Shown here in pieces: positions 4,679 to 40,816 of a stretch of 40,816 nucleotides of DNA. The notes below the pieces were generated by a model. The model saw only the letters and a program-made list of their open reading frames with translations, made no database searches and was not told the DNA's origin. The position numbers and the translations under genes were made by a program. Positions within the stretch are counted from its first letter, which is position 1; every line of letters starts with the position of its first letter. Origin of the DNA: Paramoeba atlantica (lineage: Eukaryota; Protista; Discosea); contig CDRNVI010000227.1 in assembly GCA_977017575.1 (NCBI GenBank), positions 1-40,816 on the forward strand. The letters are read 5' to 3'.

Positions 4679-5896
4679 CTATGGTGTAGCTACTAACCAC
4701 TTTCCTTGTTCTTCATCCAACTTATCTTGCACAATCGCTTCACGGATCGCAGACAATAGTCGATTTATGTAATACACATTGTGTACAGTGATCGCATGAA
4801 ATGCTAATAACTCTTTTGCCTTTAACAAGTGATGTAAATACGCACGTGAAAATTGTTGGCAGGTATGACAACCACATGTATTATCAATTGGTGTATCATC
4901 TTGCCTAAAACATGCATTTTTTAAATTAATATGTTCTTTACCTGTCATAGGTTGTTGTGTATTTTCCCAATAGTCAGCACGCACCAATGCACCGCCATGG
5001 CGTGCTAAGCGTGTTGGGTGTACGCAATCAAAGGTATCAATGCCTTGACGTACGCCATTGAAGATATCACCAATGCCACCGATCCCAAGTAAATGAACTG
5101 GACGTTCAGGAGCTAACAATGACATGGTGGTTGCCACCACTTCGTACATTTGATCTTTGTTAGCACCCAGTGATCCACCAATCGCATGTCCAAAGAATGG
5201 ATGGTCACTGACAAACTGTGCTGCTTCGCGACGTAGATCAGGATACACCCCACCTTGCACAATCCCATATAAGGCTTGTTTACCAGTATCACTCCGCTTG
5301 AACTCGGCTAAACTTCTTAATGCCCAGCGATGTGATAATTGCATCGAGCGTTCGGTGTAGTCTTTAGTGACATGAAAGGGTGTACATTCATCTAATACCA
5401 CAATTAAGTCAGCACCTAATTGCCGTTGGATCTCAATGGATTTTTCTGGCGTTAATAGGTGTTCACTGCCGTCAATATACGATTTGAATCGTGCCCCTTC
5501 TTCGGTAATGTTGGACAGCGTTTTATTTCTTGCAATCGACCGTTTTCCTTTGATTTCATCAGCAACTGATCCGTGGCCAAGACTAAAGATTTGGAAACCA
5601 CCTGAATCAGTGAGCATTGGGCCATCCCAACCCATGAAGTGATGTAAGCCACCCATTTTTTCAACCAGTGTACTACCGGGCTGCAGCATTAAATGATACG
5701 TATTGGCTAAGATAATCTGTGTATTGGCATCACGCATGTCTTGCGGAGTGCACCCTTTAATGGCTGCTTTGGTTGCACAAAAGATAAAAGCGGGTGTCTT
5801 AACTACACCATGTGGTGTGGTTAAGACACCAAGACGCGCACGGGTTTGCTGTGCTTGATGCTGTATAGTAAACGAAAAATTAGTGTATAGGGACAT
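4679..5896 (-). CDS. tgt: tRNA-guanine transglycosylase (queuine tRNA-ribosyltransferase)
   Basis: ANTYHL, TDSGGFQIFSL, DEC, GIVQGG, FDCV and the Zn site CGCHTC...HN. The start is placed at MSLYT (5896); the ORF track start at 5926 lies further inside yhhQ. Confidence 0.96.
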   Translation of the reverse strand: MSLYTNFSFTIQHQAQQTRARLGVLTTPHGVVKTPAFIFCATKAAIKGCTPQDMRDANTQIILANTYHLMLQPGSTLVEKMGGLHHFMGWDGPMLTDSGGFQIFSLGHGSVADEIKGKRSIARNKTLSNITEEGARFKSYIDGSEHLLTPEKSIEIQRQLGADLIVVLDECTPFHVTKDYTERSMQLSHRWALRSLAEFKRSDTGKQALYGIVQGGVYPDLRREAAQFVSDHPFFGHAIGGSLGANKDQMYEVVATTMSLLAPERPVHLLGIGGIGDIFNGVRQGIDTFDCVHPTRLARHGGALVRADYWENTQQPMTGKEHINLKNACFRQDDTPIDNTCGCHTCQQFSRAYLHHLLKAKELLAFHAITVHNVYYINRLLSAIREAIVQDKLDEEQGKWLVATP

Positions 5897-6650
5897 GGCG
5901 TTTCTTAATGGTATTACACATCGCATACACGATAGGCATGTAGGCTACCATCGTGATCAATCTTAAAATATAGGTGCCGAAAATATAGGTCCACATTAAA
6001 CTGTGCATCGAAATCGGTTCTGATGAAAAGATCACCCAAGCAAATATGCTAAATATAGTGTTATCAATCAAAAAGGCAATCGCAGTCGATACCCCTGAGC
6101 GCATCCACAATCCAAACGTATTTGATGCTTGTCGCAATTTTTGGAAGATGGCAATGTCGAGCAATTGACTGGCAATATACGAAATGACACTTGCTGCAAA
6201 AATAGCAACAGACGGAGTGAACAATACCTTCATGGCATTATGTGCTGTAACAAAATGAAAGTTTTCATTAGAGGGCAATACGTCAAGTGGTGTCGTGCCC
6301 AAGGTTAGCAACATGGAAATCGATATGAAAAAAGATGCAGTAAACCCAAGCCCAATAGCACGACGTGCAGCACGTGGTCCAAAGCATTCAGTTAATGTAT
6401 CGGTAGTAACAAAACTGGATGAAAAAATAATAGTGCCCAACGCAACTGGGTCTTGTAAAAAATTCAACTGTACGCCTTTTAACACTTGAATATTACCAAT
6501 GATAATGGCGAGCACACCGTAAACATATAAACCCGGTTGCCCAAAAAAACGTGCCATAACGAACATGATCATGCTGCTAAACAAAAACAGTGCTAGCAAC
6601 GGCAATTCCGGCGGAAACGTGTTAGCAAAAGCAATAAATGCGTCAATCAT
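5880..6650 (-). CDS. yhhQ: Queuosine precursor transporter (YhhQ / Vut_1 family)
   Basis: Polytopic membrane protein with TDTLTECFGPRAARRAI, ASVISYIASQLLDIAIF and RSGVSTAIAFLIDNTIF. It overlaps the tgt start. Confidence 0.88.
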   Translation of the reverse strand: MIDAFIAFANTFPPELPLLALFLFSSMIMFVMARFFGQPGLYVYGVLAIIIGNIQVLKGVQLNFLQDPVALGTIIFSSSFVTTDTLTECFGPRAARRAIGLGFTASFFISISMLLTLGTTPLDVLPSNENFHFVTAHNAMKVLFTPSVAIFAASVISYIASQLLDIAIFQKLRQASNTFGLWMRSGVSTAIAFLIDNTIFSIFAWVIFSSEPISMHSLMWTYIFGTYILRLITMVAYMPIVYAMCNTIKKRHVPIH

Positions 6651-6754
6651 GCGAACTCCGAATGATATTATCTTGCTGTAGAAATTTTGTATGGTAATCG
6701 ATTTTGCTGTGAAAAAATAGAGGAAAAACCATATCTACTACTAATGGTTATTTG

Positions 6755-7516
6755 TTACAGCACTGCTCTGATGGGTTGCAAACTAATCTGATATTGATTC
6801 AATATATCCTGAAATTGTTGGCTGGCAAAAAAATCATATTCACGTTGTCTGAATTGATCATGGTGTGTGATCGCTTGGCCAGGATGACACATGAATAACG
6901 TAGGTTGGGTCAATTTACTGATTAATGTAGCAAAGATAGTGGGGTAATCGGTTCGATTCAATGAGTAAATCCCACTGAAATTGCAGTTAGTTGGAATATG
7001 TTGTTGTGTGAGTAAGCGCCGCCAGGTTAATCCACCTAAGATATTCAAACTGATCCCTTTTAGCGTGCGTAGGTGATTCACTGTATTACGCACAATAACC
7101 TGTTTATCAGGAAAATGTTGCAGATAAAAATCGAGCAAGATTTTCCGTACTTGTGGAAATTGGTGGACATGTTGATGACCATCTATAAAGTCAGGCTGTC
7201 GGCCTACGCTGTCTTGGAAGAGATGCAATTGATCACTGAAGGCTTGTTGAATGGGTTGTGGACCAAGTCGGTGCAAATAGTTATTAACAATAAATTTCCC
7301 GAGGGTTGTATAAGGTAGATTAAGGTGTAGCCCAAGTGCAATATCAGGCAAGTTTGCCAATTGCTGCGGCATTTCCCAAGCAGGCATATTAGTCATGCAA
7401 CTAATTGCATTCAGTCTACCTATTTGTGCAAGGTGTAAAATGGCTGCGTTGATTGATTGATGTAACCCATAATCATCGGCACACAAGCAAAGTCTGTTTT
7501 TTTCAGTTGAAGACAT
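6755..7516 (-). CDS. ChbG/HpnK/YdjC family carbohydrate deacetylase
   Basis: LCADDYG, LGLHLNL, FIDGHQHVH and FMCHPG motifs. Confidence 0.92.
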   Translation of the reverse strand: MSSTEKNRLCLCADDYGLHQSINAAILHLAQIGRLNAISCMTNMPAWEMPQQLANLPDIALGLHLNLPYTTLGKFIVNNYLHRLGPQPIQQAFSDQLHLFQDSVGRQPDFIDGHQHVHQFPQVRKILLDFYLQHFPDKQVIVRNTVNHLRTLKGISLNILGGLTWRRLLTQQHIPTNCNFSGIYSLNRTDYPTIFATLISKLTQPTLFMCHPGQAITHHDQFRQREYDFFASQQFQDILNQYQISLQPIRAVL

Positions 7517-7873
7517 AATATTTACTAATGATAAATGTACTCATTGCTGTTAGTCCGGCAGCAAGATCATGCTAAATACATACGGTAAGTGCGTGTAACC
7601 CAGAAAAAAGCTATACACTGCTTGATTAATCGTGATACTGACCAGTGCTGTTGCAAAAAACCGTAATAATGTATTATGACTTTTGGGTTCGCCATTGGCG
7701 AAGGTAACTAATTTGTGTCCAAAGTAACTAATGTTAAATGCATAACAAAATGCAATAACATTGGCAAGGTATTTATTTAATTCGATAACTTCTACTAGCA
7801 GAATTAAACATAACATGTGCATAGAAAACGCAAAAGTGCCGATGATCAAAAAATACGATACTTGCTTAATCAT
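7503..7873 (-). CDS. gtrA: GtrA family polyprenol-sugar flippase (one frameshift near 7560)
   Basis: Small 4-TM protein (ANVIAFCYAFNISYFGHKLVTF). Restoring one base near 7560 gives the tail ...AGLTAMSTFIISKYYVFN*, which overlaps the deacetylase start. Confidence 0.8.
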
Positions 7874-8822
7874 TATCAAATCCGTATTTGTTTGCAATGA
7901 TATAGCCTGGTCGCTGTTTTACTTCAATGAATATTCTGCCGATGTATTCGCCTAAAATGCCGATGGATAACAATTGAATGCCACCAAAGAAGAAAACAGC
8001 GGTAACAATGGTTGCATACCCAGGGATCTTGTGATCGGAGATAATCGTATTAATCACCACTGCACTGCCATAACAAAATGCAATGATTGAAATAAGCATG
8101 CCAAATACAGTCCAAATGCGTAACGGTAGGTGAGTGAATGAGGTGATCCCAGCTAATGCCAATGAACTTAGCCGGCGCAGCTTCCATTTGCTTTCTCCAG
8201 AACGACGTTTTTCGGCGACAAACGGTATCCCAAGTGATTTAAAGCCAACCCATGCGTACAGCCCTTTCATGAAACGCGACTTTTCTTGGCATTGATTAAG
8301 TGCAGTGACGATGCTGCGATCCAATAAGCGAAAATCACCGGCATTTTTAGGAATATGAATGTTGGTAAAACGGTTAAGATAGTTGTAAAAGATTTGGGTA
8401 AACACTCGTTTTAATAACGGTTCATTTTTTCGGGAAGTTTGTATGCCATATGCCATGCTAACGCCATTTTCCCACGCGTGAATGAACTGTGGGATCAGCA
8501 TGGGTGGATGTTGGCCATCCGCATCAATAATAATCGCTGCATCACTATGGCAATGATCTAAGCCAGCTGTGATCGCATTTTCTTTACCAAAATTACGTGA
8601 CAATTGTAGTAGTTTAACCGGGTAATTACCGGTAGGTAGTTGGGTAACAATAGCAGCTGACTGATCGCTGCTGCCATCATCAATAAAGATAAATTCGAAT
8701 TGATAATCTGATAGTTGATCTAATACCGTTTGCAGTGACTGATAAAATGCAAGCAGATTATCGGCTTCATTAAAAAAAGGCACGATCAGTGTAATGGTTT
8801 TTGATAATGTCTTATGTGACAT
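7866..8822 (-). CDS. GT2 polyprenol-phosphate glycosyltransferase (GtrB/ArnC-like)
   Basis: IVPFFNEA, IDDGSSD, LSRNFGKENAITAGL, IDADGQHPP, GDFRL and RFMKGLYAWVGF motifs, two C-terminal TM helices, and GEYIGRIFIEVKQRP. Confidence 0.93.
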   Translation of the reverse strand: MSHKTLSKTITLIVPFFNEADNLLAFYQSLQTVLDQLSDYQFEFIFIDDGSSDQSAAIVTQLPTGNYPVKLLQLSRNFGKENAITAGLDHCHSDAAIIIDADGQHPPMLIPQFIHAWENGVSMAYGIQTSRKNEPLLKRVFTQIFYNYLNRFTNIHIPKNAGDFRLLDRSIVTALNQCQEKSRFMKGLYAWVGFKSLGIPFVAEKRRSGESKWKLRRLSSLALAGITSFTHLPLRIWTVFGMLISIIAFCYGSAVVINTIISDHKIPGYATIVTAVFFFGGIQLLSIGILGEYIGRIFIEVKQRPGYIIANKYGFDND

Positions 8823-8848
8823 GTCAATATATTCCTAACATTAAAAGT

Positions 8849-10426
8849 CTAGTTAGTTGGTACAATCCAAAATGCAGTTACTGTTCTTGGAAATATCGTT
8901 GTATATTGAAATCCTGTTGGATGAAAATAAATTTTCTGTTGCCTAACTGCGATATCATTGTGTTGCAGCCATGCTATTGTGTCGCGAATACAGCTATCAT
9001 ATTTCCTATCATGTTCAGTCTCAATAAAGCGACGATGATAGCATAAGATAACGCCATATTCTTTGTGCCAATTGGGATAGGGATTAACCAAGGCTGGCAT
9101 TTGATTGGGATAACCAGGCAATGCAATCGGATGATTAGGTAAATAGAAGGCTAGTGTTGCTGGCTCACGCCAAGTACCTGCTGCCCAAGACAGTGTTTGA
9201 TTAGGAAAATGTTGTTGAAAGTGTTGTGCAATAGCCTCAGCCATTTGTTGGCGTGCCATTGTGTATACGCTATATCCTGTTCGCAAATAGTACACGGGGA
9301 TGAGCAGTGTGCATATCAATACCGCAGCCCATATTGTTTTTAATACATTAATCAGCAGTTTTTTGTCTAACACATCCAGTTTATTCATCAACAAGAATGT
9401 CATCAGAATGGGCAGGGCAAACCATGCTGGAAATGCCCAGTGTTGTCGTAACCCTAGTTGCAAAAACAGACCAAGTAAGCACGTGATCACAATCGGTAGA
9501 AAACAGATAAGCCATACATTGGTTGGGATGACGTTAATAGCAGTCAGTTGTTGTTCGGTTACCGTATCACGATTGGTTTTAGTAGCGCTTTTCCACCATA
9601 AACAAATAAACGCAAACCACGCGATCGGGAGTTGGTAAAACATCGACAATAAAAAGCTAGCAATGCGAAGCACATTAAGATGACCATCAAATTTAGAACC
9701 GATGTATTGATTAGACGGGAAATGCATTTGGTATTCCCATAGTATATGCGGCAGTATTAATATGGCTATCAGCAGCATCGCGATGTAGGGGTAAATCGTT
9801 TTATAACTCGCTCTCATGTTGCGGTCAAACAGCGATATGATAAATAACGATAGCAATAATACCGCAGTGAAATACTTAGCTAACATCCCAGCAGCAGCTA
9901 ATATTGAAAACAATACCATTGCAATGAGTTTTGCTTTAACCTGATCGCATCGATAGTGATACCAGAAAAAGGTAACGGTTATCCATGGCCAAAATGATAA
10001 TAAACTTTTATCAGCATTGTATTGCCCTGCATCATAACTGTAAGCACCAGATAGCAAGGTAAATAGTAGGGTTAATAAGATAAATAGATGATATTTTTTT
10101 GATGTATTGGTAATTGCAGTTGCTTGGTTTAAGAATAAGTGTGCGAGTGTCAAAATCCCTAATACACCAATGATGGCATTGAGGTAAGCCATGATGTAGT
10201 AGGAGAGGGTATTAGTCGGAAACAAGCTAAACCAGGCATGGGTTATCCACCCTGACAATGGAGGATGTTTGAAAGAGCCTAGCATGAAACGTTGTCCCCA
10301 TGCGTAGACTTCTATCATCTCACCATAGCCGTCTAAGTTGGGTTTTAATACGTGAACAACGAAAACCCATAACAAGCAATGGAACAATAATAATAACCAA
10401 ATGGTGCGATTTTTTAAGAAAAACAT
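8849..10426 (-). CDS. GT39/ArnT-like integral membrane glycosyltransferase
   Basis: N-terminal EVYAWGQ...KHPPLSGW loop, GMLAKY and PHILW motifs, about 11-13 hydrophobic segments and a C-terminal periplasmic domain. Confidence 0.82.
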   Translation of the reverse strand: MFFLKNRTIWLLLLFHCLLWVFVVHVLKPNLDGYGEMIEVYAWGQRFMLGSFKHPPLSGWITHAWFSLFPTNTLSYYIMAYLNAIIGVLGILTLAHLFLNQATAITNTSKKYHLFILLTLLFTLLSGAYSYDAGQYNADKSLLSFWPWITVTFFWYHYRCDQVKAKLIAMVLFSILAAAGMLAKYFTAVLLLSLFIISLFDRNMRASYKTIYPYIAMLLIAILILPHILWEYQMHFPSNQYIGSKFDGHLNVLRIASFLLSMFYQLPIAWFAFICLWWKSATKTNRDTVTEQQLTAINVIPTNVWLICFLPIVITCLLGLFLQLGLRQHWAFPAWFALPILMTFLLMNKLDVLDKKLLINVLKTIWAAVLICTLLIPVYYLRTGYSVYTMARQQMAEAIAQHFQQHFPNQTLSWAAGTWREPATLAFYLPNHPIALPGYPNQMPALVNPYPNWHKEYGVILCYHRRFIETEHDRKYDSCIRDTIAWLQHNDIAVRQQKIYFHPTGFQYTTIFPRTVTAFWIVPTN

Positions 10427-24649: not shown

Positions 24650-25172
24650 TGCGTTTACTAGCAGATAGTATCTTCTTATTGTTTGTCGCAGGTATCCCGT
24701 TGTGGGGTGCGATAAAACGAGTTGCTATTTACGATGTGTTTATCATGGGCGCTAAAGATGGACTAGATACTGTCATAAAAGTATTTCCTTATTTATTAGC
24801 GATGTTAGTTGCCATTGGGATGTTTCGTGCATCTGGTGCAGTTGATTTATTAGCAGATGCATTATCACCATTGCTGCAAAAATAGGGATGCCAAGTGATG
24901 TCTTACCATTAGCGATATTACGTTCTTTTTCAAGTAGTGCTGGGCATAGCATACTCGCTGATATCGCACAGCAGCACGGAGGCGATGGTTATGTATCTTA
25001 TCTAGCAGCAACAATGATGGGGAGCACCGAAACAACATTTTATGTGGTGGCTGTGTATTTTAGTGCAGCCAGTATTCAACGTACACGTCATGCTATTCCA
25101 GCAGGATTATTTGCTGATTTAGTTAGCGTATTTGCATCGATTTGGATTTGTCACTGGTTTTTCCTATCTTGA
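24649..25172 (+). CDS. spmB: SpmB-like membrane protein (one frameshift near 24882)
   Basis: YDVFIMGAKDG, PYLLAMLVAIGMFRASGA, GSTETTFYVVAVYF and RTRHAIPAGL motifs. An A is missing in the A-run at 24878-24883. Confidence 0.85.
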
Positions 25173-26024
25173 TGATGACTTATATTATAGATAAGTTGTA
25201 AATCACAAATACGTCTACCATCTGCTTTTTTAATTTCAAATTGTAACTTATCAATGGTAACACGTTCACCGATTATAGGAACATGGCCCGAGTTTTTGTA
25301 AGATAAGTCCACCAATGGTATCAAATGTACTGTCATCAAAGTCAGTAGCAAAGTAATTATTAAATTCGTCAATTGGTGTTGTTGCTGAAATATTGAAGAG
25401 TTGCTCGCCTATTTTAGTAATGCATTTATCGTTTATTTCATCACTATCATATTCATCTTCAATATTACCTACAATTTGTTCTAAGATATCTTCAATAGTG
25501 ACTAAACCAGCGACACTACCATATTCATCTAATACAATTGCCATATGATTGTGATTTAAACGAAATTCTTTAAGCAAACTGTCTAACCGTTTACTTTCTG
25601 GTACATAAATACAGGGACGTAAACTATCGACAATATTAAAATCACTTTCTTCTGCTTGATGAAACACGTATTTTAATAATTCTTTTGCTAGTAGAATACC
25701 AATCACTTCATCTTTGCTGTCAGCAATTACTGGAAAGCGGGAATGGCCTGATTCAATGACCGTTGGTAGAAACGTTTCAGGATTTTGTTTTTGTTCAACA
25801 ACAACCATTTGTGAGCGTGTGATCATAATATCACGCACATGCATGTCTGATATTTGCAGCACACCTTCAATCATATCCAATGCTTGGGCATCTAATAATT
25901 GACGTGTTTCGGCGTTACGCAATACATTAATTAATTGTTGTCTGTCTTGTGGTTTACGTAGTAAAACCTGGCTAAGGCGTTCAAGCCATGATTTGGATGT
26001 TTTATTGGCAGTTTCATCTGACAT
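25151..26024 (-). CDS. corC: CBS-domain Mg/Co efflux protein CorC (one frameshift near 25270)
   Basis: MIEGVLQISDMHVRDIMI, SGHSRFPV, YVPESKRLDSLL, DEYGSVAGLVTIEDILEQIVG and FDTIGG motifs. Confidence 0.93.
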
Positions 26025-26044
26025 CGTAGTGTATAACTCCTGTA

Positions 26045-26524
26045 TTACTGAATATTGTTACGATCTTGATAAGGATTAGCAATAGTTAATTTGGCAAGAA
26101 TAGCAATTTCTAACGATTCCATTTCAGTAGCTTGTTTTGTCGTTTTGTGATCATAGCCACACAAGTGTAACGTACTATGTACAGCTAAATGTGCCCAATG
26201 ATCAATCAGTGGTTTATGTTGTATTTTTGCTTCTGTTTCAACAACAGATGCACACATGACCAAATCACCTAATAGTAAATAGGGGGTATCAATATCCGGC
26301 ATCCCATCAAAGGCAAATGCTAAAACGTTTGTCGTGCCTTGTTTATGTCGATATGTTTGATTTAATTGTGCCATTTCATCTGTATCAACGATGCGAATAT
26401 TGATTTCAACAGGGTTATTATGATCGATTAAAGCAGCATGGCACCAGCGGTTAAATTCGAAGATGCTAGGAACATCTGGTGCAGAAGTTACATTCTGTAA
26501 CGTAATATGATGATGCACGCTCAC
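26045..26524 (-). CDS. ybeY: rRNA maturation endoribonuclease YbeY
   Basis: [24 protein letters not shown] and [15 protein letters not shown] motifs. Confidence 0.95.
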
Positions 26525-26919
26525 GGTTTTCTCCGTTGTGCCTTAGCCGATTGTTCATCATAACGGGTATATGCTTCAACAATTGTTCTAACTAATACGT
26601 GACGTATAACATCATGCGTCTGGAAAAAGGTAAATTTAATCGAGTCGATGTTTTGCAATACTGCAACCGCATGGCGTAAACCTGATTGTTGGTTAGTAGG
26701 TAAATCGATTTGTGTAATATCCCCAGTAACAACCAGCTTGGTCCCGAACCCAAGGCGAGTCAGTAGCATTTTCATCTGTTCAGTTGTCGTGTTTTGTGCT
26801 TCATCCAGAATAACAAATGCATCATTTAAAGTGCGTCCTCGCATGTAAGCTAATGGAGCAACTTCAATAATATTATTTTCAGTGTGTTTAGCAGTTTGTT
26901 CTAAGCCTAACATGTCATA
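26521..26919 (-). CDS. phoH: PhoH family ATPase (YbeZ), C-terminal part only; N-terminus cut off by the junction
   Basis: YDMLG...[28 protein letters not shown]...[10 protein letters not shown]...DVIRH. Similarity stops upstream of the Tyr codon at 26917-26919, and the Walker A region is absent. Confidence 0.93.
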
Positions 26920-26921
26920 TG
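26912..26921. other. Bacterial / mitochondrial junction
   Basis: GC count is 20/60 on line 26821-26880 and 1/60 on line 26941-27000. phoH is truncated here, and the coding strand and genetic code both switch. Confidence 0.92.
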
Positions 26922-29900
26922 AAATAAAAAATTTCAATCTTAATTTAATAATAAATATTTATTATTTAATGAATAAATTTTTTAAATTTAATATTAATAA
27001 AAAATTTTATAAATTAGAGTATTTAAATAATAAATATTTATTATTGAATTTAAATAATTCTAAATCGTTTTTTGTTATAAAAGATAATTATAAAAATTTT
27101 TATAATAATTTTTTTCAAAATTCTTTTATGAATTTTTTAGATTGTAATAAAAAATTTATATATAATAGAAAGTTAAGGTATAAAAATTATAATTTTTTAT
27201 TATCATATAAAAATAAATTAAGAAAAAAATTGTTTTTAAAGCAAACTCGTTTTAATAATATAGATAATGAAGATTTTTTAAATTTTGGACCAGAAAATGG
27301 TTTATATTTTCAAACTATAAGTAATAGTTTTAGAAAGAAAAGAGAAGAAAAGAGAAGAAGAAAACAACAATTATTTCATTATAATAATAATATAATAAAA
27401 AAAACTATTTTTTTAAAAAAAGGTCAAGTATTTTTAGGTTATAATTTTAAGTCTTTATCAAAATTAAATTTATTTAATTTAGATTATATAAAATTTAATA
27501 ATAATTTTTATATAAGAAAAAAATATTGTCTTGAAAAGAATAAAAAAAATTTATTTTTATTATTTAGAAAAGAAAATTTATTAAAATATTATAATAAAAA
27601 ATATTTAAAATATAAAAAATTTAATATAAAAAATTTTTATAATAATTATTATTTTTTATTTAAAAAATTATTGTATAAAAAAATAAAAATAAATTATATA
27701 GAAAGAGAAAAATTTTAATTAAAAAAAAATTTAAAAATAAATTATATAATTATAATTTATTTTTAAATAAACTAAATTTATTTAAAAATAAAAAAGAAAA
27801 GAGAAATTTATTTAATATTAGATATAATTTTTTTTATAAAATATATAATATTAATTTATGAAAAAAATATAAAAGAAAAGAGAAATTTTTAGATTATATA
27901 AAAAGAATAAAAAATAACTTTTATTCTTTAAAATTATATAAAAGAAAAGAAAAAAGAATAAAATTATATAATTATTCATATTTAATTAAAAGAAAAAAAT
28001 TATTAAATTATAATTTTTTATATTTTATAAAAAATTTATATATTAATAGTATTTATAATAATATTAAAAATAAATTTTTATATAAAAATTATAAAAAATT
28101 TTATATAATGAATAAATTTTTATATACTATTAATTCGAATATTGATTATAAAATATTAAAAATATTTTTAATAATATTAAATAATATTAAATTATTAAAT
28201 AATTATAAAATTTCTAAAAATGTTAAAAATTTCTTTTTTAAGAATAGTTTTAATAACATATTAAAAAAAAGAAATTGAAAACAAATAAATAAATATTTAT
28301 ATTTTCGTATTTTTAATAAATATAATTATAATAAAATTAATAATTATAAATATAAAAAGAAAAAATTAAAAAATTTATAAATATAAAAAGAAAAAATTCA
28401 AAATTTTTTATTATTAAAAAAATCAACAACAAAAGAAAAAAAAATATATAAATTTGATAAATTTTTTTATAATATTTCTTTAAATTTAATTAAATTAAAT
28501 AAATTACATAAAAAAAAGGGAATAAAGAAAAAAAATTATTTTAATAATAATAAAAATATGAAATCTTTAATAAATTATTATATTTACAATTATAATAATA
28601 AAGATTTATTGAATTTTAATATTTATAATTATAATTGTAAATATAATAAATTTAATAAAGATTATTGTTCTCATAAATATAAAAATTTTAAAGTTTATAA
28701 ATATAAAAATTTTATATTTAATAGTTATGAATTAGATTATTACGATATAATAAATAAATTTCATAAAAAAAAATGAAATTTTTATATTATAAATGAAAAA
28801 GAAAAGAATGATTTATATTATAAATGAAAATCTATAAAGATACCTTATAATAATTTTTTAGTATTTTCTTGTAATATTAATTGTGAAAATTATTTAATAA
28901 AAGTTTTAACTAAGATTAAAAAGAATTATATTTTTTATTCAAAAAATTTATTAAATAATAATTCAATTATATCTAAAAGAAAAGAGAATAAAAGTTTAAA
29001 AAAGAGAAATTTTATATCTTATAATTGTAATTTAATTGATAATTTAAAATTAAATAAAAGAAAAGAGAAAAATTTAAAATCTTGAACTTATTATTTATTT
29101 ATAAATAATAATTTAATAAAAGAAAAGAGAAAAATAATTTTAAAACCAATAAAAGAAAAAAAAAATATTAAAAACTCAATTTGTTTATGAAAAAAAAGAA
29201 ATTGATTTATAAATAAATCTTTTACTCAGAAGAGTTCATATTTAAAATTTTATAATAGAAAGAAGAAAGTATTTATATTAATTCAAAAAAATAATTTAAA
29301 GAAAAGAGAAAAAAAATTATTAAATTTATATTTAACAGGAAAAAAGAGAAGATTCTATAGGTATAATAATATTACATCTTTTTTTTTAAATTATAAGTTT
29401 ATTAATAATAATAAAACATTATTATTTAAACAAATGAAAAAAAAATTAAAAATTTTATTTAAAAAAGGTTTATTTAAAAAAAGTAGTATGTATTTTTTTA
29501 GAAGAACATTATTAGTAGAATATCCTAAATGATCATTAATAAAAGAAAATTATTTTAAACGTAATGAAGATAATATAATGTCGTATTTATCAAAATATAT
29601 ACATTTTAAAATTTATAATATATATAGAAAAATATATAATATTGATTTATTATTTTTAAAACGAATTAATCAATATAAAAATTTTAGTAAACTAAATTAT
29701 TCAAAAATTTTAATTAATATTAGAAGTAATTTGTTACAATATTTTTATAACAAAAATAAGACTTTCAAAAGTTTTATTAAAAATAAAGTTTACTATAATA
29801 AATTTTTAGTAAAAAATGTATCAATAAAAAATTATATATTATTTAATAATATTAATGATTATACTAATAATTATAAAAATATAAATAATTTGAAATATAA

Positions 29901-30222
29901 TAATTCTATATATAGTTATTATAAATATTTTTTAAAATTAGTATTATTTAATAATTTGATTTTAAAAAATAATTATACTAAAAAAATAAATTGTGATATT
30001 AGTTTATTTATTACTAAATTTATGAAAAATTTAAATATAATATATAAGTATATATATAGTATTAAGTATTCAAATAAAAAAAATTTAAATTATTATTCAA
30101 AATTAAATGAAATAAATTTTTTTAATAATATTTATGACTATGATTATAGTTTATTAAATAATAATAGCTTAATAAATTATAAATTAAATACTGTTACTTT
30201 ATTAAATTCTAAAAAATATTAA
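26912..30222 (+). CDS. Unassigned very large K/N/Y/F-rich mitochondrial ORF (about 1,100 codons, TGA=Trp, apparent frameshifts near 27715 and 28375-28400)
   Basis: 26912-27718 is open. A shifted frame stays open from about 27716 to 28380. 28558-30222 is one uninterrupted frame when TGA=Trp (the track ORFs at 28558 and 29578 are in phase). I recognise no ribosomal-protein motif. Confidence 0.55.
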
Positions 30223-30460
30223 TTAAATAATATTTAATTAATAAATTTAAAAAGAAATTTTTAAATTTGAATATTATTATTAATTTGAATAATAATAATA
30301 TTTTTAAAATAAGGTAAAAAGAAAAAAATATTTTTATCTTATATATGTTTGCACCTTCAAGATGTTGTATAGAAAAAGAAAGAAAAGAATAAACGTGAAA
30401 AAATGATTAAGAAAATTATTTAGTAATTAAATTATAGTAATAAAAAAAAAAATTATTATT

Positions 30461-30841
30461 ATGCCACAATTAGATTTAGGAATTTTATTTTTAGAATTAG
30501 TTTTAAATTTTATATTTTTTTGATTAATTTATATTTATTATGCAAGATATATATTCCCTTTAATAAATAAAACTATTAAATTAAGAAAATATAAATTAAA
30601 ATCTATAATAAAAAGATTATTATTATTAGAATCAAATATTTTATTTATTATAAAATTAAATTTAAGTATTTTATTAAATAATAATTTTTTATTAAATAAA
30701 TTTGTTGTTTTATTAAAATCTAAAATTAATAATATTAAAATTATTATTTTTAGTAAATTATATATATTAGGTTTAAATTTCTTAAAAAAAGAATCTTTAT
30801 TAAATAAAAAATATTTTATAATAAAAACAATATATAAATAA
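30461..30841 (+). CDS. atp8: ATP synthase F0 subunit 8 (mitochondrial), 126 aa
   Basis: Starts MPQLD, then one TM helix with an in-frame TGA (Trp) and a basic tail. TAATG overlap with cob. Absent from the ORF track because of the TGA. Confidence 0.85.
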
Positions 30842-31987
30842 TGAGATTAGTTAAAAAAGATATTTTTGTAAATGCATTTTATAATGCTTTAGTAGTTTAT
30901 CCAGCTCCTGTTAATATAACTTATGCTTGAAATTTAGGAGTTAGTGCTGGTTTGTTTTTAATTATTCAGATTTTAACAGGTGTTATTTTAGCTATGTATT
31001 ATACACCTAATGCTGATTTAGCTTTTGCTAGTGTTAGACATATAGTTAATGATGTACATTTTGGTGATATGCTAAGAATGTACCATGCTAGTGGATCATC
31101 AGTTTTTTTTTGTAATATATTTACATGTATTTAGAGGTTTATATTATGGTTCATATACTTATCCTAGACAATTTGTATGAGTATCTGGTGTTATAATATT
31201 ATTAATTATGATTATAACAGCTTTTGTAGGTTATGTTTTACCTTGGGGTCAAATGAGTTTTTGAGCAGCAACTGTTATTACTAATTTAGTGTCAGTTATA
31301 CCTTTTGTAGGTAATGATATATTATTATGATTATGAGGTGGATTTTCTGTTGATGAAGCTACATTACATCGTTTTTTTAGTTTACATTATTTATTACCTT
31401 TTGTTATAGCAGCTTTAGCTGGAGTTCATATTATATTATTACATGAAGTTGGTTCTAATAATATATTAGGTATTAATCATAAGGTAGATCAAATACCATT
31501 TCATCCTTATTTTGTTTTTAAAGATTTATTTAGTTCATTATTATTATTATTTGGTTTTAATATGTATGCTATAAAACATACTCCAAGTATAATAGACGCA
31601 GATAATTATTTAGAAGCAAATCCTTTAGTAACACCCGTACATATCGTACCAGAATGATATTTTAAAGCTTTTTATGCAATTTTAAGATCTGTACCAGATA
31701 AAGCAGGTGGTTTTATCTTATTAGTTTTATCTATTATTGTTTTAATAATATTTCCATTTTATGTGAAAGCACCTATAGTTAGTGGTTATTTTAGACCTAT
31801 TTATAATTTAGGTTTTTGATTATTTATTATGGATTTTATTACATTAACCTGAATAGGAGGTAAACCTATAGAAGAACCTTATTATTTTATAGGTCAAATG
31901 GCTACAAGTTTTTATTTTATATATTTTATTATATTGTTACCTGTTATTGTTAAATTAGAAAAATCATTATATAAAAATATTACTTAA
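30841..31987 (+). CDS. cob: Apocytochrome b (mitochondrial); T-run near 31103-31111 appears 2 nt short
   Basis: YAWNLG, heme His motifs, [37 protein letters not shown] and PIEEPY, read with TGA=Trp. Confidence 0.97.
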
Positions 31988-31991
31988 ACAT

Positions 31992-32494
31992 ATGAATAAA
32001 ATTTTTAATTTTATAATTTTTTATATTTCTATATTATTTTTAGTTAATATGTTTTCAAATCATTTATTTTTTTTAATTCTGTTGGTAATTTATTAATTAT
32101 AATTATATTATTAATTATATCTTTATTTACTTTTTATATTTCTTCGTTAAAAAGTAATTTCTTAATTATAAAAAAAAATGAAATATATAAACAATATTAT
32201 TTAAAATTATTAAAACTATATTATATTTTTTATTTATATAAAAATATAATATTTCAAAATATTTTAATATCTACATTTCAAAATTATTATTTTAAATTTA
32301 TAATTTTATTTTATAATATTAATTTAAATATATTATTAAATTCTATATCAAATTTATATAGTTATTTATATAATAATTTTTTAAATACTTTTTATATTAA
32401 TAATTATTTTATATTTAGTATTAAATTTAAATTATTAAATCAAATAAACTATAAAAATTTTATTTTTAAAAAATATTTTACTATAAAAAAATAA
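31992..32494 (+). CDS. Mitochondrial membrane ORF of about 167 aa, possibly ATP synthase subunit b (atp4/ymf39); one frameshift near 32070
   Basis: ATG at 31992 and TAA at 32492-32494 are in frame if one T is added to the 8-T run near 32067-32074. Hydrophobic N-terminus, then a polar K/N-rich region. The assignment rests on size and hydropathy only. Confidence 0.45.
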
Positions 32495-32497
32495 TAT

Positions 32498-32854
32498 ATG
32501 AATTTTGAATATAGTATAATTATTATCTCTATATCATTAAGTATGATTATTTCTTTAGTATTATTTTCTATTATTTTACTTCTTATTTATTCAAAATTTG
32601 AGATAGAAAAAGTTTCAGCATATGAATGTGGTTTTCACCCTTTTGAAGATACTAGACATAATTTTAATGTAAGATTTTATTTAGTATCTATTTTATTTTT
32701 AATTTTTGATTTAGAAATAATATTTTTATTTCCATGATTGACTTTAGTTAATTTTTTAGGAACAAGTGGTTTTTTAGTAGTATTGATTTTTATTACTATA
32801 TTAACTATAGGTTTCATATATGAATGATTAAAAGGTGCTTTAACCTGAGAGTAA
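32498..32854 (+). CDS. nad3: NADH dehydrogenase subunit 3 (mitochondrial), 118 aa
   Basis: [34 protein letters not shown] and C-terminal YEWLKGALTWE*. Confidence 0.96.
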
Positions 32855-32872
32855 AAAATTATTTTATATATT

Positions 32873-33625
32873 ATGAATAAATTTTTTCAACCATTAGATC
32901 AATTTGATATATTTTCTTTATATATAAATTTTTATTTTAGTGATTTTTATATAACAAACTTATTTATATATTTATTTATTATTTTTTTTATAATAAATAT
33001 TATAACAAGTAATGTATTATTATCTAAATTAAATTTAGTTTATAAATCGTTATGACAATACATATATGAGAATTTTATATATTTATTTCCGTTAAATGTT
33101 TTAGTTACACAAGTAGGTAAAAGAGGTGAACCATATTTTGTTTATATAGCTAGCTTATTTTATTTTATATTAATAGCAAATTTTATTGGTTTAGTACCAA
33201 GTTCTTTTACTATTACAAGTCATATAATTTTAACATTTTTATTAGGATCAATTACTGTTATAGGATTAACTATAATAGGTTTTTTAAAACAAAAATTACA
33301 TTTTATACAGTTATTTATACCAAAAGGTGTTCCTAATATTTTATTACCTATGTTAATAGGTATCGAAGTTATTTCTTATATTGCAAGAGGTTTTAGTTTA
33401 TCTATACGGTTATTTGCAAATTTAATGTCGGGACATTCATTAATACATATTTTATTATTTTTTATTGTAAAAATATTAAAATTTAATTATATTATAGGTA
33501 TTTTAGGAATATTATTAATAACTGTAATTTTTTTATTAGAGTTTGGTATTTCATTTTTACAAGCTTATGTATTTATTGTTTTAGTTTCTATTTATTTAAA
33601 AGATTCTTACGAAGCTGGACATTAA
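32873..33625 (+). CDS. atp6: ATP synthase F0 subunit a (mitochondrial), 250 aa
   Basis: PLDQF, ANFIGLVP, IEVISYIARGFSLSIRLFANLMSGH and LQAYVF motifs. A single frame when TGA=Trp. Confidence 0.96.
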
Positions 33626-33643
33626 AAAACATTTATTTTAACA

Positions 33644-33964
33644 ATGTTTAATATCTTAATTCCTTTTGAAACATTTATACCTATTTTAAGTTTTAGTTTA
33701 TTTATTATAGGTATAGCGGGTATTTTTATTACACGTAGAAATATAATAATAATAATAATGTCTATAGAGTTAATTTTAGCATCTGTAAATTTATTATTTA
33801 TTTTTTTATCAATATATTTAGATGATATATATGGTCAGATATTTGCTTTATATATATTAACTATAGCAGCTTCTGAATCAGCTATTGGTTTAGGATTAAT
33901 AGTTATTTATTATAGATTAAGAGGTATTATATCTATAGATTATATTAGTACTATAAAAGGTTAA
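33644..33964 (+). CDS. nad4L: NADH dehydrogenase subunit 4L
   Basis: RRNIIIIIMSIELIL, GQIFALYILTIAASESAIGL and YYRLRG motifs. Confidence 0.95.
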   Translation: MFNILIPFETFIPILSFSLFIIGIAGIFITRRNIIIIIMSIELILASVNLLFIFLSIYLDDIYGQIFALYILTIAASESAIGLGLIVIYYRLRGIISIDYISTIKG

Positions 33965-33983
33965 ATTTTTTTATATACTTTTT

Positions 33984-36001
33984 ATGTATTTATTAGTATT
34001 ATATTTACCATTAATAAGTTTTTTAATTATAAGTTTTTTTGGGCGTTTATTAGGAAATAAAGGTAGTTTTATAATTGCGAATTTTAATATGTTATTAACA
34101 GTGTTGTTATCATATTATATTTTTTATGAAACTGTATTAAAAGGTTCTGTATGTTTTTTAAAATTATTTTCATGATTTAATATAGGTTTATTTAATGTAA
34201 CATGAGGATTTATTTTCGATCCTGTAACAGGTGTTATGTTAATTGTAGTAAATACAATATCTTTATTAGTTCATTTTTATTCAATAGGTTATATGTATAA
34301 TGATCCTTTTTCTTCTCGATTTGTATCTTATTTATCATTATTTACATGATTTATGTTAATGTTAGTTACAGCTGATAATATATTACAATTATTTTTAGGT
34401 TGAGAAGGTGTTGGTTTAGTATCTTATTTATTAATTAATTTTGATTTACAATAGCAGATGCAAACAAAGCTGCAATTAAAGCTATTATTATGAATAGAAT
34501 AGGTGACATTGGAGTTGGTTTAGGTATATGTTTAATATATTTAGAATATAAAACATTAAATTTTAGTATAATATTCGCAATAAGTGATATGTGTCAATTT
34601 GATTATATTTATTTTATAAATAATTATTTTAATACAATAACTTTGATAACTATTTTTATATTAATTGGAGCTATGGGAAAATCTGCACAATTAGGTTTAC
34701 ATACTTGATTACCGGATGCTATGGCTGGTCCAACACCAGTTTCTGCTCTTATACATGCAGCAACAATGGTTACAGCTGGAGTATTTATTTTAATAAGATT
34801 ATCACCAATGGTTGAATATTCAGCTATTGGTTTATGAATTATAACTTTAGTTGGTGTTTTAACTAGTTTTTTTGCAGCAACTATAGGTTTATTTCAAAAT
34901 GATATAAAAAAGGTTATAGCATATTCAACTTGTAGTCAATTAGGTTATATGGTGTTTATATGTGGGTTATCAAATTATTCACTAAGTTTATTTCATTTAA
35001 CTAATCATGCTTTTTTTAAAGCATTATTATTTTTAAGTGCGGGGGCTATTATACATGCTTTATCTGATGAACAAGATATAAGAAAATATGGAGGGTTAAT
35101 TAAATTATTACCTTATAGTTATATTATGATGTTAATAGGTTCTTTAGCATTAATGGGTATACCTTTTTTAACAGGGTTTTATTCTAAAGATGTTATAATT
35201 GAAATTACTTATATATCATATATAATAGATAGTTCTTTTATTTATTGATTAAGTGTTATAGCAGCTTTGTTTACATCATTATATAGTATTAGGTTATTAG
35301 TATATGTTTTTATAACATCACCTAATGGTTATAGAAAAATGTTTGAATTAATACATGAATCTAATATTTTTATGTCTTTACCTTTATTTATATTAGCTTT
35401 AAATAGTATATTTTTTGGTTATATTAATAAAGATTTATTTATAGGATTAGGTAATGATACTTGATTAAATTGATTAAATATAATTTCAACTAGAAATATT
35501 TTAATTTTAGAATCAGAATTTTTACCTTGATATATAAAAAATATTCCTTTTTTTTTTAGTATGTCTGGTATAATAATTATTTTTTTAATAAATTATTATT
35601 ATACTTATTTATATAAAGTTTTAAGAAGTAATAATTATTTATATTTTAAAAGATATAATAATATTGCAAGTTTTTTTTCTTATAAATGGTATGTGGATAC
35701 TATTTATAATAAAATAATTTTAGGAGGTTTTATTAAATTATCCTATATAGTATTTAAAAATATTGATAGAGGTATTATAGAATTAATAGGGCCTTTAGGT
35801 TTAGTTAGATTATGAAATTCTTTAAGTATTAATTATAAATATTTTTTCCCAACAGGTTATATTTTTAATTATTTGTTCTTATTTATTATTTCATCTGTTA
35901 GTTTAATTATATTCTATATATTACCTATAAATAATTTAAATAGTGAATTATTATTTATATTAATTGCTATAATTTTAATAAATAAATATAAAAATAAGTA
36001 A
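33984..36001 (+). CDS. nad5: NADH dehydrogenase subunit 5; one T missing near 34440
   Basis: [55 protein letters not shown] and GFYSKD motifs. Confidence 0.96.
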
Positions 36002-36018
36002 AATTTTTTTTAAAACAT

Positions 36019-36606
36019 ATGGATCAAAATTTATTTTATATATTTTTTTTTATAATAAGTATTGTATCGGCTATTTTAGTAATAATTTCTAAAAATCCTT
36101 TACATTCTATTATTTATTTAATATTAGTTTTTTGTAATATAGTTTTTATATTATTATTGTTGGAGTTGGAATTTATGTCTATGGTGTTTTTAATAGTTTA
36201 TATAGGTGCAATAGCAGTATTATTTTTATTTATTATTTATATGTTAAATATAAAAGTTATAGAATTGAATGAATTAAATATAAAATATTTGATAGGTATT
36301 ATATTATTAACTTTATTAATAATATTTTTAATTTATTTATATTATATACCGATTAATGTAATTTTTAATATAGATTCCTCAAACAATAATAATTATATAA
36401 ATTATTATAATATTTTATATAATATATCAAATTTAAATTTGATATCTTTAATATTATACGATAAGCATTATATATTATTTATAATACTTAGTCTTATATT
36501 ATTATTAGCTATGATTGGTGTTATTATATTAACATGTAAAAGAACATATTATCTAAAAGAACAGGTAATTTTTGAACAAAATAAAAGGTTTATAAAGAAT
36601 CCATAA
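36019..36606 (+). CDS. nad6: NADH dehydrogenase subunit 6
   Basis: [34 protein letters not shown] and [12 protein letters not shown] motifs. Confidence 0.95.
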
Positions 36607-36607
36607 A

Positions 36608-38638
36608 ATGAATAATTATAAAATAAATAATATTGCAGTTAAAGATAATAATATGAAAACTATATTACAATTATGTAATATGATTAATATAGATATACCA
36701 AAATTTTGTTATCATGAACAATTATCTATAGCAGGTAATTGTAGAATGTGTTTAGTTGAAGTAAAAGGAGCTATAAAACCTATAGCTTCTTGTGCATCCC
36801 CTTTAAATAATAATATGCATATATTAACTAATACTAAATTAGTTAAAAAGGCTAGAGAAGGTGTTTTAGAATTTTTATTATTAAATCATCCATTAGATTG
36901 TCCTATTTGTGATCAAGGAGGTGAATGTGATTTACAAGATCAATCATTAATTTTTGGTAATGATAGAGGTAGATTTTATGAAAATAAAAGATCTGTTAAT
37001 GATAAAGATTGTGGACCTTTAATAAAAACTATTATGACAAGATGTATTCATTGTACTAGATGTATACGTTTTATAGATGAGTTTATTGGTTATAAATATT
37101 TTGGTTTGATAGGTCGAGGACAAAATATAGAAATAAGTAATTTTTTATCAAAAAATATTAATTCGGAATTATCTGGTAATTTAATTGATTTATGCCCTGT
37201 AGGTGCTTTAACTTCTAAACCTTATTCATTCATTTCTAGACCTTGAGAACTTATTTCTTGAAATACTATAGATATTAATGATTTATTACATATAAATATT
37301 AGAATAGATATTAGAGATAGTGAAATATTAAGAGTTTTACCTTTATTTAATGATTATATACATGAGATCTGAATCTCAGATCTAACTCGTTTTTCTTATG
37401 ATAATCAAAAGAATAATCGAATAATTAATCCTTTAAAAAAGGAAGGTGCAAATAAATTTATTATATATAGTTGAGAAAAAGTATTAAATTTAATATTAAA
37501 AAAATGTTTAAATAGTAATTTACATTTTTTAATAGGTGATAATATAGATAGTGAAACTGCTTTAGTAATAAAAAAAGGAAAAAATTATTTTAATAATCAT
37601 GAATTTACTATTAATTATAAAAAATTAACTAGGAATTCAAATAATCGTAAAAATTATATTTTAGATTATAATATATATAAAGAATTAAATGAATTTAAAA
37701 ATATTATATTAATTAATATAAATATTAGATTAGAATATCCTTTATTAAATATAAAGTTAAAACGATTTAAAGATTTAAAATTATTAAATATTTATAATAT
37801 AGGGACCTCTTATAATCAAAATTATAAAAATATAAATTATTCATCTAATTTATTAGAAGTAAAAAAATTTATAGAGGGAAAATCTTTATTAAATAATATT
37901 GTATTAAAAGCATCTAAAAATTTAATTTTATTAAATGATAATACTTTATTTAATTTTTTAATTACAACATTGAAAAATTTAAATTTAGAATCAAGTATTA
38001 ATATAGGGTTTTTAAATAATTTAAATATAAATATTATAGCTAATGAATTAAATTTATTTAATTCATTAGTAAAATTTAATGATTATAGTTTTAAAAAAAT
38101 GATTTATAAAGAAAATAATATTTTATATAATTTAAATAATTATAATTATAATTATTTAAATTATAATTGTGATTATAATATTTTTCAAGGTTGTTATTTA
38201 CCTATATTAAAAGAAATTAATAATTATGATTTATTATTACCATCAATAACTCATTATGAAAAAAAAAGTTTATTTATAAATATATTTGGTTATTGTCAAT
38301 CGACAAAATTTATTTTATTTCCGCCGAAGAATGCAAGAAATGATTGAAAAATATTATATATATTATTTAAAACAATTATTAGTGATGAAAAGATTATGAA
38401 ATTATCTTTTAGTAATATTAGATTATTATTAAGTTCTTATAATATAAATATAAATACTATATTAAATATATATAATAATAATGAAATATCAAATTATAAA
38501 AATATTATGGTTTTGAAAAATAAAAATTTATATAAAAATATGACTAATATATATTCTAATAATAAATTTTTACAATCATCAAAAATTTTAAACAGTTGTT
38601 TAATTAATTCTAAAAAAATATATAATAATTTTCATTAA
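36608..38638 (+). CDS. nad11: NADH dehydrogenase subunit 11 (75-kDa subunit, NuoG homologue), full length 676 aa
   Basis: Fe-S motifs PKFCYH...GNCRMC...[15 protein letters not shown] and CIHCTRC...CPVGAL. The track ORFs at 36608, 37970 and 38396 are in one frame, separated only by TGA codons. Confidence 0.95.
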
Positions 38639-38651
38639 AAGATTTTAAAAT

Positions 38652-39638
38652 ATGAATTTTTTGTTAACTTTAATTATAACAATATTAAAATATTTAATTT
38701 TAATAGTACCTGTATTAGTAACTGTAGCTATTTTTACAGTTTTTGAAAGAAAAGTTATGGGTTATATACAACGAAGACAAGGTCCTATAAAAGTAGGTTT
38801 TTTAGGTATTTTGCAACCTTTTGCCGATGGTTTAAAATTAATGATAAAAGAACCTGTTATACCGGTAAATTCAAATTATTTAATGTATATAGCAGCTCCA
38901 ATATTAACATTATTATTAAGTTTAATAAATTGAATATTAATACCTTTTGATGAAAATGTAGTAATATCTAATATTAATATAGGAGTTTTGTTTATTTTGG
39001 GTATTTCTTCTTTAAGTGTATATGGTGTTATTATAGCTGGTTGAGCTAGTAATTCAAAATATGCATTTTTAGGTGCTCTTAGATCTGCTGCACAAATGAT
39101 ATCTTATGAAGTATCTATAGGTATAATATTAATAACTCTTCTAATAGGTGTAGGTTCTTTAAATTTAAGTAATATAGTATTAGCTCAAGAGGATATTTGA
39201 TTTATTATACCATTTTTTCCTTTATTTTTATTATTTTTTATATCTTCTGTTGCAGAAACTAATAGACACCCTTTTGATTTACCTGAGGCAGAAGCAGAAT
39301 TAGTTTCTGGTTATAATGTAGAATATTCATCAGTAGGATTTGCTTTTTTTTTTATCGGTGAATATGCTAATATTATATTAATGAGTGCATTAAATGTAAT
39401 TTTATTTTTAGGAGGTTGATTACCACCTTTTAATTTTAATTTTTTTTTACCGCCTATAGTATGATTTACAATAAAAATTGTTTTAATGATATTTTTATTT
39501 ATAGTAATAAGAGCCATGTTACCTAGATATAGATATGATCAATTAATGATATTAGGTTGAAAAGTATTTTTACCGTTATCATTAGGTTTATTAGTTTTCT
39601 ATGCAGGTATAATGATTGGTTTTGATTTTTTACCTTAA
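38652..39638 (+). CDS. nad1: NADH dehydrogenase subunit 1, 328 aa
   Basis: [52 protein letters not shown] and PRYRYDQL motifs. Confidence 0.97.
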
Positions 39639-39671
39639 TTTTTTAGAATAATAAAATATAAAAAATTTTGA

Positions 39672-40816
39672 ATGTTATTAAAAATTTTACTTTTTTTACC
39701 ATTATTTTTTGCGTTTATTTTAAGTTTAATACCTAAGAAAAAAATTATATTATTAAAACAATTATCTTTATTATTTAGTATAATAATTTTTTTTTATTGT
39801 ATTAAATTATTAGGTAATTTTAATATATATTATTCGTATATTCAATTTCAATCAAGTATTAGTTATTATCCTGGTATGGATTTTAGTATAGGTATAGATG
39901 GTATTTCTATTTTTTTTATATTATTAATGAGTTTACTTTTACCTATTTCGTTATTAGTAAATTGAGAAAGTGTGAAATATCGTAATAAAGATTTTACTAT
40001 TACTTTATTTATATTAGAATTTTTAGTTTTTTGTATTTTTTGTTGTTTAGATATATTTTTTTTTTATATATTTTTTGAAGGTGTTTTAATACCTATGTTT
40101 TTTATTATAGGTATATGAGGTTCAAGACAACGAAAAATTCATGCTGTTTATCAATTTTTTTTATATACTTTTTTTGGATCAATATTTATGTTAGTATCTT
40201 TTTTAATAATTTACTTACATGTAGGTTCTACAAATTGAAATATAATTAAATATATTGAATTTTCTGATCAACGACAATTAATATTATGATTAGGTTTTTT
40301 TATAGCATTTGCTATAAAAGTACCAATGATACCTTTTCATATATGATTACCAGAAGCTCATGTCGAAGCACCTACAACAGGTTCTATCTTATTAGCTGGT
40401 ATTTTATTAAAATTAGGTACTTATGGTTTTTTAAGATTTTTATTACCTTTATTTCCTTATGGAATGAAATTTTTTTCACCTTTAGTTATAGTTATTTGTA
40501 TAATTAGTGTTATATACGGTTCGTTAGTAACAATTAGACAAATAGATTTGAAAAAAATAATAGCATATTCATCTGTTGTACATATGAATTTTGCAATAAT
40601 AGGTTTATTTGCTAATAATTTAGAAGGTTTACAAGGTAGTTTATTCTTAATGATTAGTCATGGTATAATATCAAGTTCTTTATTTTTTTGCATAGGTGTT
40701 TTATATGATCGTTATCATAGTCGTATATTATATTATTATGGAGGTTTAGTACAAGTTATGCCTATATTTGCTGTAATATTTATGATTTTTTCTTTAAGTA
40801 ATATGGGCTTCCCTGG
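39672..40816 (+). CDS. nad4: NADH dehydrogenase subunit 4 (runs off the window end)
   Basis: GIDGIS, FEGVLIPM, KVPMIPFHIWLPEAHVEAPT, LLKLGTYG, AYSSVVHM, MISHG and LYDRYH motifs. Confidence 0.97.

Follow-up and report, generated by a model that had tools for sequence, protein, structure and literature searches.

A draft contig of Paramoeba atlantica joining a gammaproteobacterial chromosome to mitochondrial DNA within phoH: very probably a technical chimera

Described systems comparable with the join

Single chimeric long reads have been documented as a source of misassembled contigs (PMC7500977). In the nanopore misassemblies of Drechmeria coniospora, one assembly shows a non-syntenic join that is missing from other assemblies of the same DNA, the break point follows no sequence pattern, and the error is detectable against independent assemblies (PMC7500977). 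The join analysed here appears alike in these respects, but its partners are a bacterium and the mitochondrion of the host, whereas those in D. coniospora are two chromosomes. Chimeras also arise during library preparation with ligation kits, where they make up at least 1.7% of the reads (White et al. 2017, PMC5600009). The likeness lies in the placing of unrelated molecules end to end with no need of homology, by the preparation and not by biology; the difference is that the chimeras in that study were formed from short amplicons sequenced on the MinION.

Insertions of organelle DNA of the NUMT type have been reported as real (PMC7500977). They resemble the present case in that an assembly shows mitochondrial sequence running directly into DNA of other origin. 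However, each is bounded by two junctions, recurs in independent assemblies, and is covered at the depth of the host genome, none of which is seen here, and the recipient here would be a bacterium.

The mitochondrial genomes of amoebozoans of the Acanthamoeba type are about 40 kb long, have their genes on one strand, read TGA as Trp, and carry nad11 and a cluster of ribosomal-protein genes. The mitochondrial partner of the present join is similar in layout, being a 39.4-kb circle with genes on one strand, TGA for Trp, nad11, and the row rpl16-rpl14-rps14-rps8. It differs in its GC content, which is 16% overall and 9% in a giant ORF, and in that ORF itself, which encodes 1159 aa and has no assigned function.

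The two parts of the window and their intact parents

The window is the whole stretch of DNA that was analysed (40,816 nucleotides, contig CDRNVI010000227.1 of assembly GCA_977017575.1, recorded under P. atlantica). Its base composition changes as abruptly as the first-pass annotation had described: GC is 0.401 over positions 1-26919 and 0.164 over positions 26921-40816, with a value of only 0.092 in the first 3.5 kb of the latter, and the G+C counts of the successive 60-nt lines across the join are 17, 4, and 2.

Positions 1-26919 are a segment of a gammaproteobacterial chromosome, collinear with contig ctg4025c of the ENA assembly ERZ24900291 (99.85-99.95% identity by blastn). This contig (loci L001 and L008) is 2,447,832 bp long, is circular (as the suffix 'c' denotes), and has a GC content of about 40%. 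The match is collinear from position 1 and stops at 26919, while ctg4025c carries on through phoH, with miaB (454 aa), phoH (339 aa), ybeY, and corC in a row, all intact. The exact product of ybeY is encoded on ctg4025c adjoining the intact miaB and phoH, and the same product is found on a Logan contig. The Logan contig ERR14835899_80800, from run ERR14835899, shows 100% identity to ctg4025c across 10,076 nt and extends 443 nt beyond the break with phoH uninterrupted. An intact continuation of miaB-phoH, which had been proposed as something to look for, is thus present on ctg4025c, and the Logan contig likewise reads through the break.

The three bacterial genes next to the join all lie on the minus strand. 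The gene corC/ybeX (25151-26024) encodes CBS and CorC_HlyC domains; its product has 290 aa in the intact genome versus 252 aa for the ORF in the window, and the cause is a window-specific extra C at 25289. The ybeY endoribonuclease gene (26045-26524) is intact, with 159 aa and a match to Pfam PF02130 (E = 2.5e-32). The third, phoH/ybeZ (26521-26919), is a 3' fragment that comprises codons 208-339 of 339. The earlier claim that phoH is cut on the minus strand is correct: the break falls at codon 208 in phase 0 (position 9606 of locus L001), and residues 1-207 are gone. The ORF that remains (26521-26937) matches PF02562 only over profile positions 88-204/205 (E = 6.6e-50). The missing part includes the Walker A motif, GPAGTGKT at residues 146-153 of the intact PhoH, so the full-length PF02562 domain with its P-loop is found in the gene of ctg4025c and not in the copy in the window. 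Among GTDB species representatives, none has a PhoH more than 62% identical to the bacterial one. The bacterium is a gammaproteobacterium, probably of an undescribed lineage that lives with the amoeba, possibly inside it.

From position 26921 onwards, the window matches ctg3923c, a 39,429-bp circular mitochondrial contig, at 99.9%; the local alignments of the window to mtDNA omitted places 27702-27790. Contig ctg3923c belongs to ERZ24900291, the same assembly as ctg4025c, and the earlier statement that both DNAs were in one sample is borne out by the two circles. The mitochondrial break point is also crossed by ctg2721l of ERZ24894578 and by locus L006 of a related species, so that the intact upstream mtDNA, likewise proposed as a check, is present on ctg3923c, on ctg2721l, and in the relative.

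The identification of the right part as mitochondrial, made at first from the letters alone, is confirmed by its gene content. The genes in 26921-40816 are all on the plus strand and form a tight block. The giant ORF (26921-30222, codons 60-1159 of 1159; about 9% GC and no assigned function) is followed by orf126 (30461-30841), which is called atp8-like from its N-terminal MPQLD motif alone and has no Pfam match. Next are cob (30841-31987; 382 aa when intact, frameshifted in the window by a shortened T-run near 31102), an ORF with no assigned function between cob and nad3, nad3 (32498-32854; PF00507 on the product of mtDNA locus L004), and atp6 (32873-33625; PF00119). The gene nad4L (33644-33964; PF00420, E = 5.4e-24) has its exact product on five contigs, namely ctg3923c, contigs of three other ENA assemblies, and one Logan contig. 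It precedes nad5 (33984-36001; 672 aa in the intact form, with a frameshift in the window where a T is lacking at 34438) and nad6 (36019-36606; PF00499, E = 6.4e-26). The block continues with nad11 (36608-38638), which encodes the 75-kDa subunit of NADH dehydrogenase (676 aa; Fer2_4, NADH-G_4Fe-4S_3, and Fer4_Nqo3), nad1 (38652-39638; PF00146), and the 5' part of nad4 (39672-40816). The last runs off the end of the window and is continued in locus L005, where the product is a Proton_antipo_M protein of 490 aa. The mitochondrial part of the window contains no tRNA or rRNA genes.

The proposed switch of code to TGA = Trp also holds. Across the listed ORFs, in-frame TGA far exceeds TGG (52 versus 3), and in the related mitochondrial genome L006 the two codons are swapped at cob codons 136 and 142. 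The right part of the window is mitochondrial, uses genetic code 4 with TGA for Trp, and carries a set of respiratory-chain genes, in which Pfam matches back cob, nad1, nad3, nad4L, nad5, nad6, nad11, and atp6.

Some further features of this mitochondrial DNA may be mentioned. Locus L006 (ERZ25074695 ctg243506_2x_l) is about 88% identical to it and keeps its gene order; it probably represents a sister species of the host. This level of identity does not extend to the giant ORF, which diverges much faster (74-78% at the nucleotide level against about 88% for the rest of the mtDNA) and whose counterpart in L006 is called as two products of 306 and 911 aa. A perfect 40-nt A+T palindrome occurs at 38126-38165 of the window, in the poorly conserved middle of nad11, and is likewise found in the mtDNA loci L003, L004, and L005.

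Anatomy of the join and quality of the contig

The join was mapped by a three-way comparison of the window with its two intact parents. Bacterial identity ends at 26919 with ...CATGTCATA, and mitochondrial identity starts at 26921 with GAAATAAAAAA.... Between them lies a single untemplated base at 26920: the window has T, whereas the bacterium has C and the mtDNA has A. Just before its break point the mtDNA has the letters ...TTTATTCA, which do not resemble the bacterial ATGTCATAT, and not one base is common to the parents at the join. The first-pass annotation had seen here a 9-nt overlap readable in both genomes and had suggested a microhomology; this part of its description does not survive the comparison, and base 26920 matches neither parent. 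There is no run of N at the join.

On the mitochondrial side, the break falls in the giant ORF at codon 60 in phase 0. In the intact mtDNA this ORF is uninterrupted and encodes 1159 aa, both on ctg3923c and on ctg2721l of ERZ24894578 (the product is found on loci L003 and L004). It occupies 3097-6576 of L004, and the alignment of the window begins at L004 position 3274; the true start therefore lies 177 nt (59 codons) upstream of the break. Upstream of the ORF in the intact mtDNA are rpl16, rpl14, rps14, rps8, and further small ORFs. The idea that the join marks the opening of the giant ORF is rejected, since the join lies 59 codons inside the ORF. The Met-Ser-Tyr that had been read as the opening of this ORF is bacterial sequence: the ATG at 26912 belongs to the bacterium and is in frame with the giant ORF by chance. 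The plus strand carries a chimeric ORF at 26882-27718. A Pfam scan of the 214-aa C-terminal piece of the giant ORF gave no family, the intact product has no recorded Pfam match either, and the one piece that was looked up as an exact product is not on record in the public gene collection.

Only a single junction is present. The mtDNA fills 26921-40816 with no return to phoH, miaB, or any other bacterial DNA. The pattern of the junction has no exact match among GTDB genome contigs or JGI metagenome contigs, collections from which the relevant assemblies may be missing. Four runs of one study contain 0.88-0.97 of the sampled words of 24900-28900, a share that indicates the presence of both DNAs and does not address their joining. 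Logan contigs carrying sequences of the window come from runs ERR14835898 and ERR14835899. Separately, one run with a different organism label and from a different study contains 0.60 of the same sampled words, which means that DNA of the bacterium, of the mitochondrion, or partly of each is present in this other project's sample too.

The window is of draft quality. Its private one-base errors total about 31, at 291-25289 and 27676-34438. The bacterial part differs from ctg4025c by about 24 one-base indels and one mismatch, and all of these are private to the window. Since there is perfect agreement between ctg4025c and the Logan contig, the errors lie in the window. The mitochondrial part has about seven window-private differences, nearly all of which are errors in the length of A- or T-runs; at the nad5 site 34438, the window is contradicted by four other, concordant assemblies. 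False frameshifts result in corC, cob, nad5, and the giant ORF, the last of which is split into three frames by window-specific errors in the length of A-runs at 27676, 28359, and 28416. With about one error per kb, while both genomes assemble as clean circles, it appears that the window contig was built from very few reads, without deep coverage.

Origin of the join and its meaning for the record

The contig is very probably a technical chimera, in which the bacterial chromosome was joined to the mtDNA of the host in at least one sequenced molecule or read. Each genome is also found complete in the same data set, as a circle of its own, and this points to an artefact rather than to gene transfer. 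The preference of the first-pass annotation for a chimera by ligation, template switching, or assembly over a transfer is thus supported in its main point by the intact parents, although not in the microhomology that was to explain it. With nothing in common between the parents at this point and no run of N to separate them, the join would have been present in at least one read. It probably arose during library preparation, with one or a few reads in its support.

The proposed course of events is as follows. In at least one molecule or read, a bacterial fragment broken in phoH would have been joined to a fragment broken in the giant ORF of the circular 39.4-kb mitochondrial genome of the eukaryotic host, by end-to-end joining, of the ligation type, of two DNAs that were abundant during the preparation of the library. 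On one side, the assembler would then have lengthened the chimeric read by means of ordinary bacterial reads, and the product would have stayed in the assembly as a contig that is small and poorly polished. Judged by the anatomy of the junction, the joining was probably of the ligation type, because a join that lacks microhomology is more readily explained by blunt ligation, or by some other joining that needs no homology, than by template switching. The T at 26920 is what an A-tailed mitochondrial end would leave; this is weakly suggestive, since such a coincidence is to be expected one time in two.

Other origins of the contig differ in how well they accord with this anatomy. A polymerase might have switched templates during MDA or long-range PCR in a low-input library, with no ligation involved. 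Protist samples are often amplified, which would provide the occasion for such a switch. Template switching, however, normally relies on a microhomology of a few bases, and the present join has none and carries a filler base in addition. An amplification chimera is thus rather unlikely, and template switching is the less likely of the two ways of forming a chimeric molecule. A pure misjoin by the assembler, with no read spanning the junction, would be in keeping with the small size and poor polishing of the contig. Overlap and de Bruijn assemblers, however, join contigs via shared sequence, whereas the parents have nothing in common at the join, and a scaffolder would presumably have left a run of N; such a misjoin is very unlikely.

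A real integration would mean that, in part of the bacterial population, phoH took up a piece of host mtDNA of at least about 14 kb. Both DNAs come from one sample, and the four runs with most of the sampled words are compatible with an integration, though the share of words does not test the junction. The event is also conceivable if the bacterium, for which no close relative has been sequenced (62% identity at most for PhoH), lives inside the amoeba. Against it stand the uninterrupted phoH on the circular chromosome and on the independent Logan contig, and the single junction, with no second one to flank an insert with the target gene. The mtDNA is, moreover, cut inside an ORF, and the contig is of draft quality. 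The truncated phoH products (starts 26937 and 26913) are absent from the public gene collection, which tells weakly against integration. Taken together, a real integration is highly improbable. The narrower version, in which a few intracellular gammaproteobacteria took a large piece of host mtDNA into phoH by homology-independent end joining and the rare hybrid was caught at low frequency, is about as improbable, or slightly more so. The technical chimera remains the preferred explanation; transfer from organelle to bacterium is not supported, and the feature has no biological function.

For the record, the consequences are practical. The contamination that the first-pass annotation had flagged is supported, as both genomes are in ERZ24900291 and bacterial DNA is in the window: a genome record with this contig includes at least 26.9 kb of bacterial DNA, from a genome of 2.45 Mb, together with chimeric sequence of organelle and bacterium. 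With about one false indel per kb, corC, cob, nad5, and the giant ORF acquire false frameshifts and would wrongly be taken for pseudogenes. Altered residues or pseudogenes elsewhere in the window (for example, in 4679-10426) need to be compared with ctg4025c before they are believed, and claims of transfer, pseudogenisation, or odd ORFs from such contigs should first be compared with ctg4025c and ctg3923c. The value of the finding therefore lies in quality control, as a flag for contamination and draft-quality sequence, and not in the biology of the amoeba or of the bacterium.
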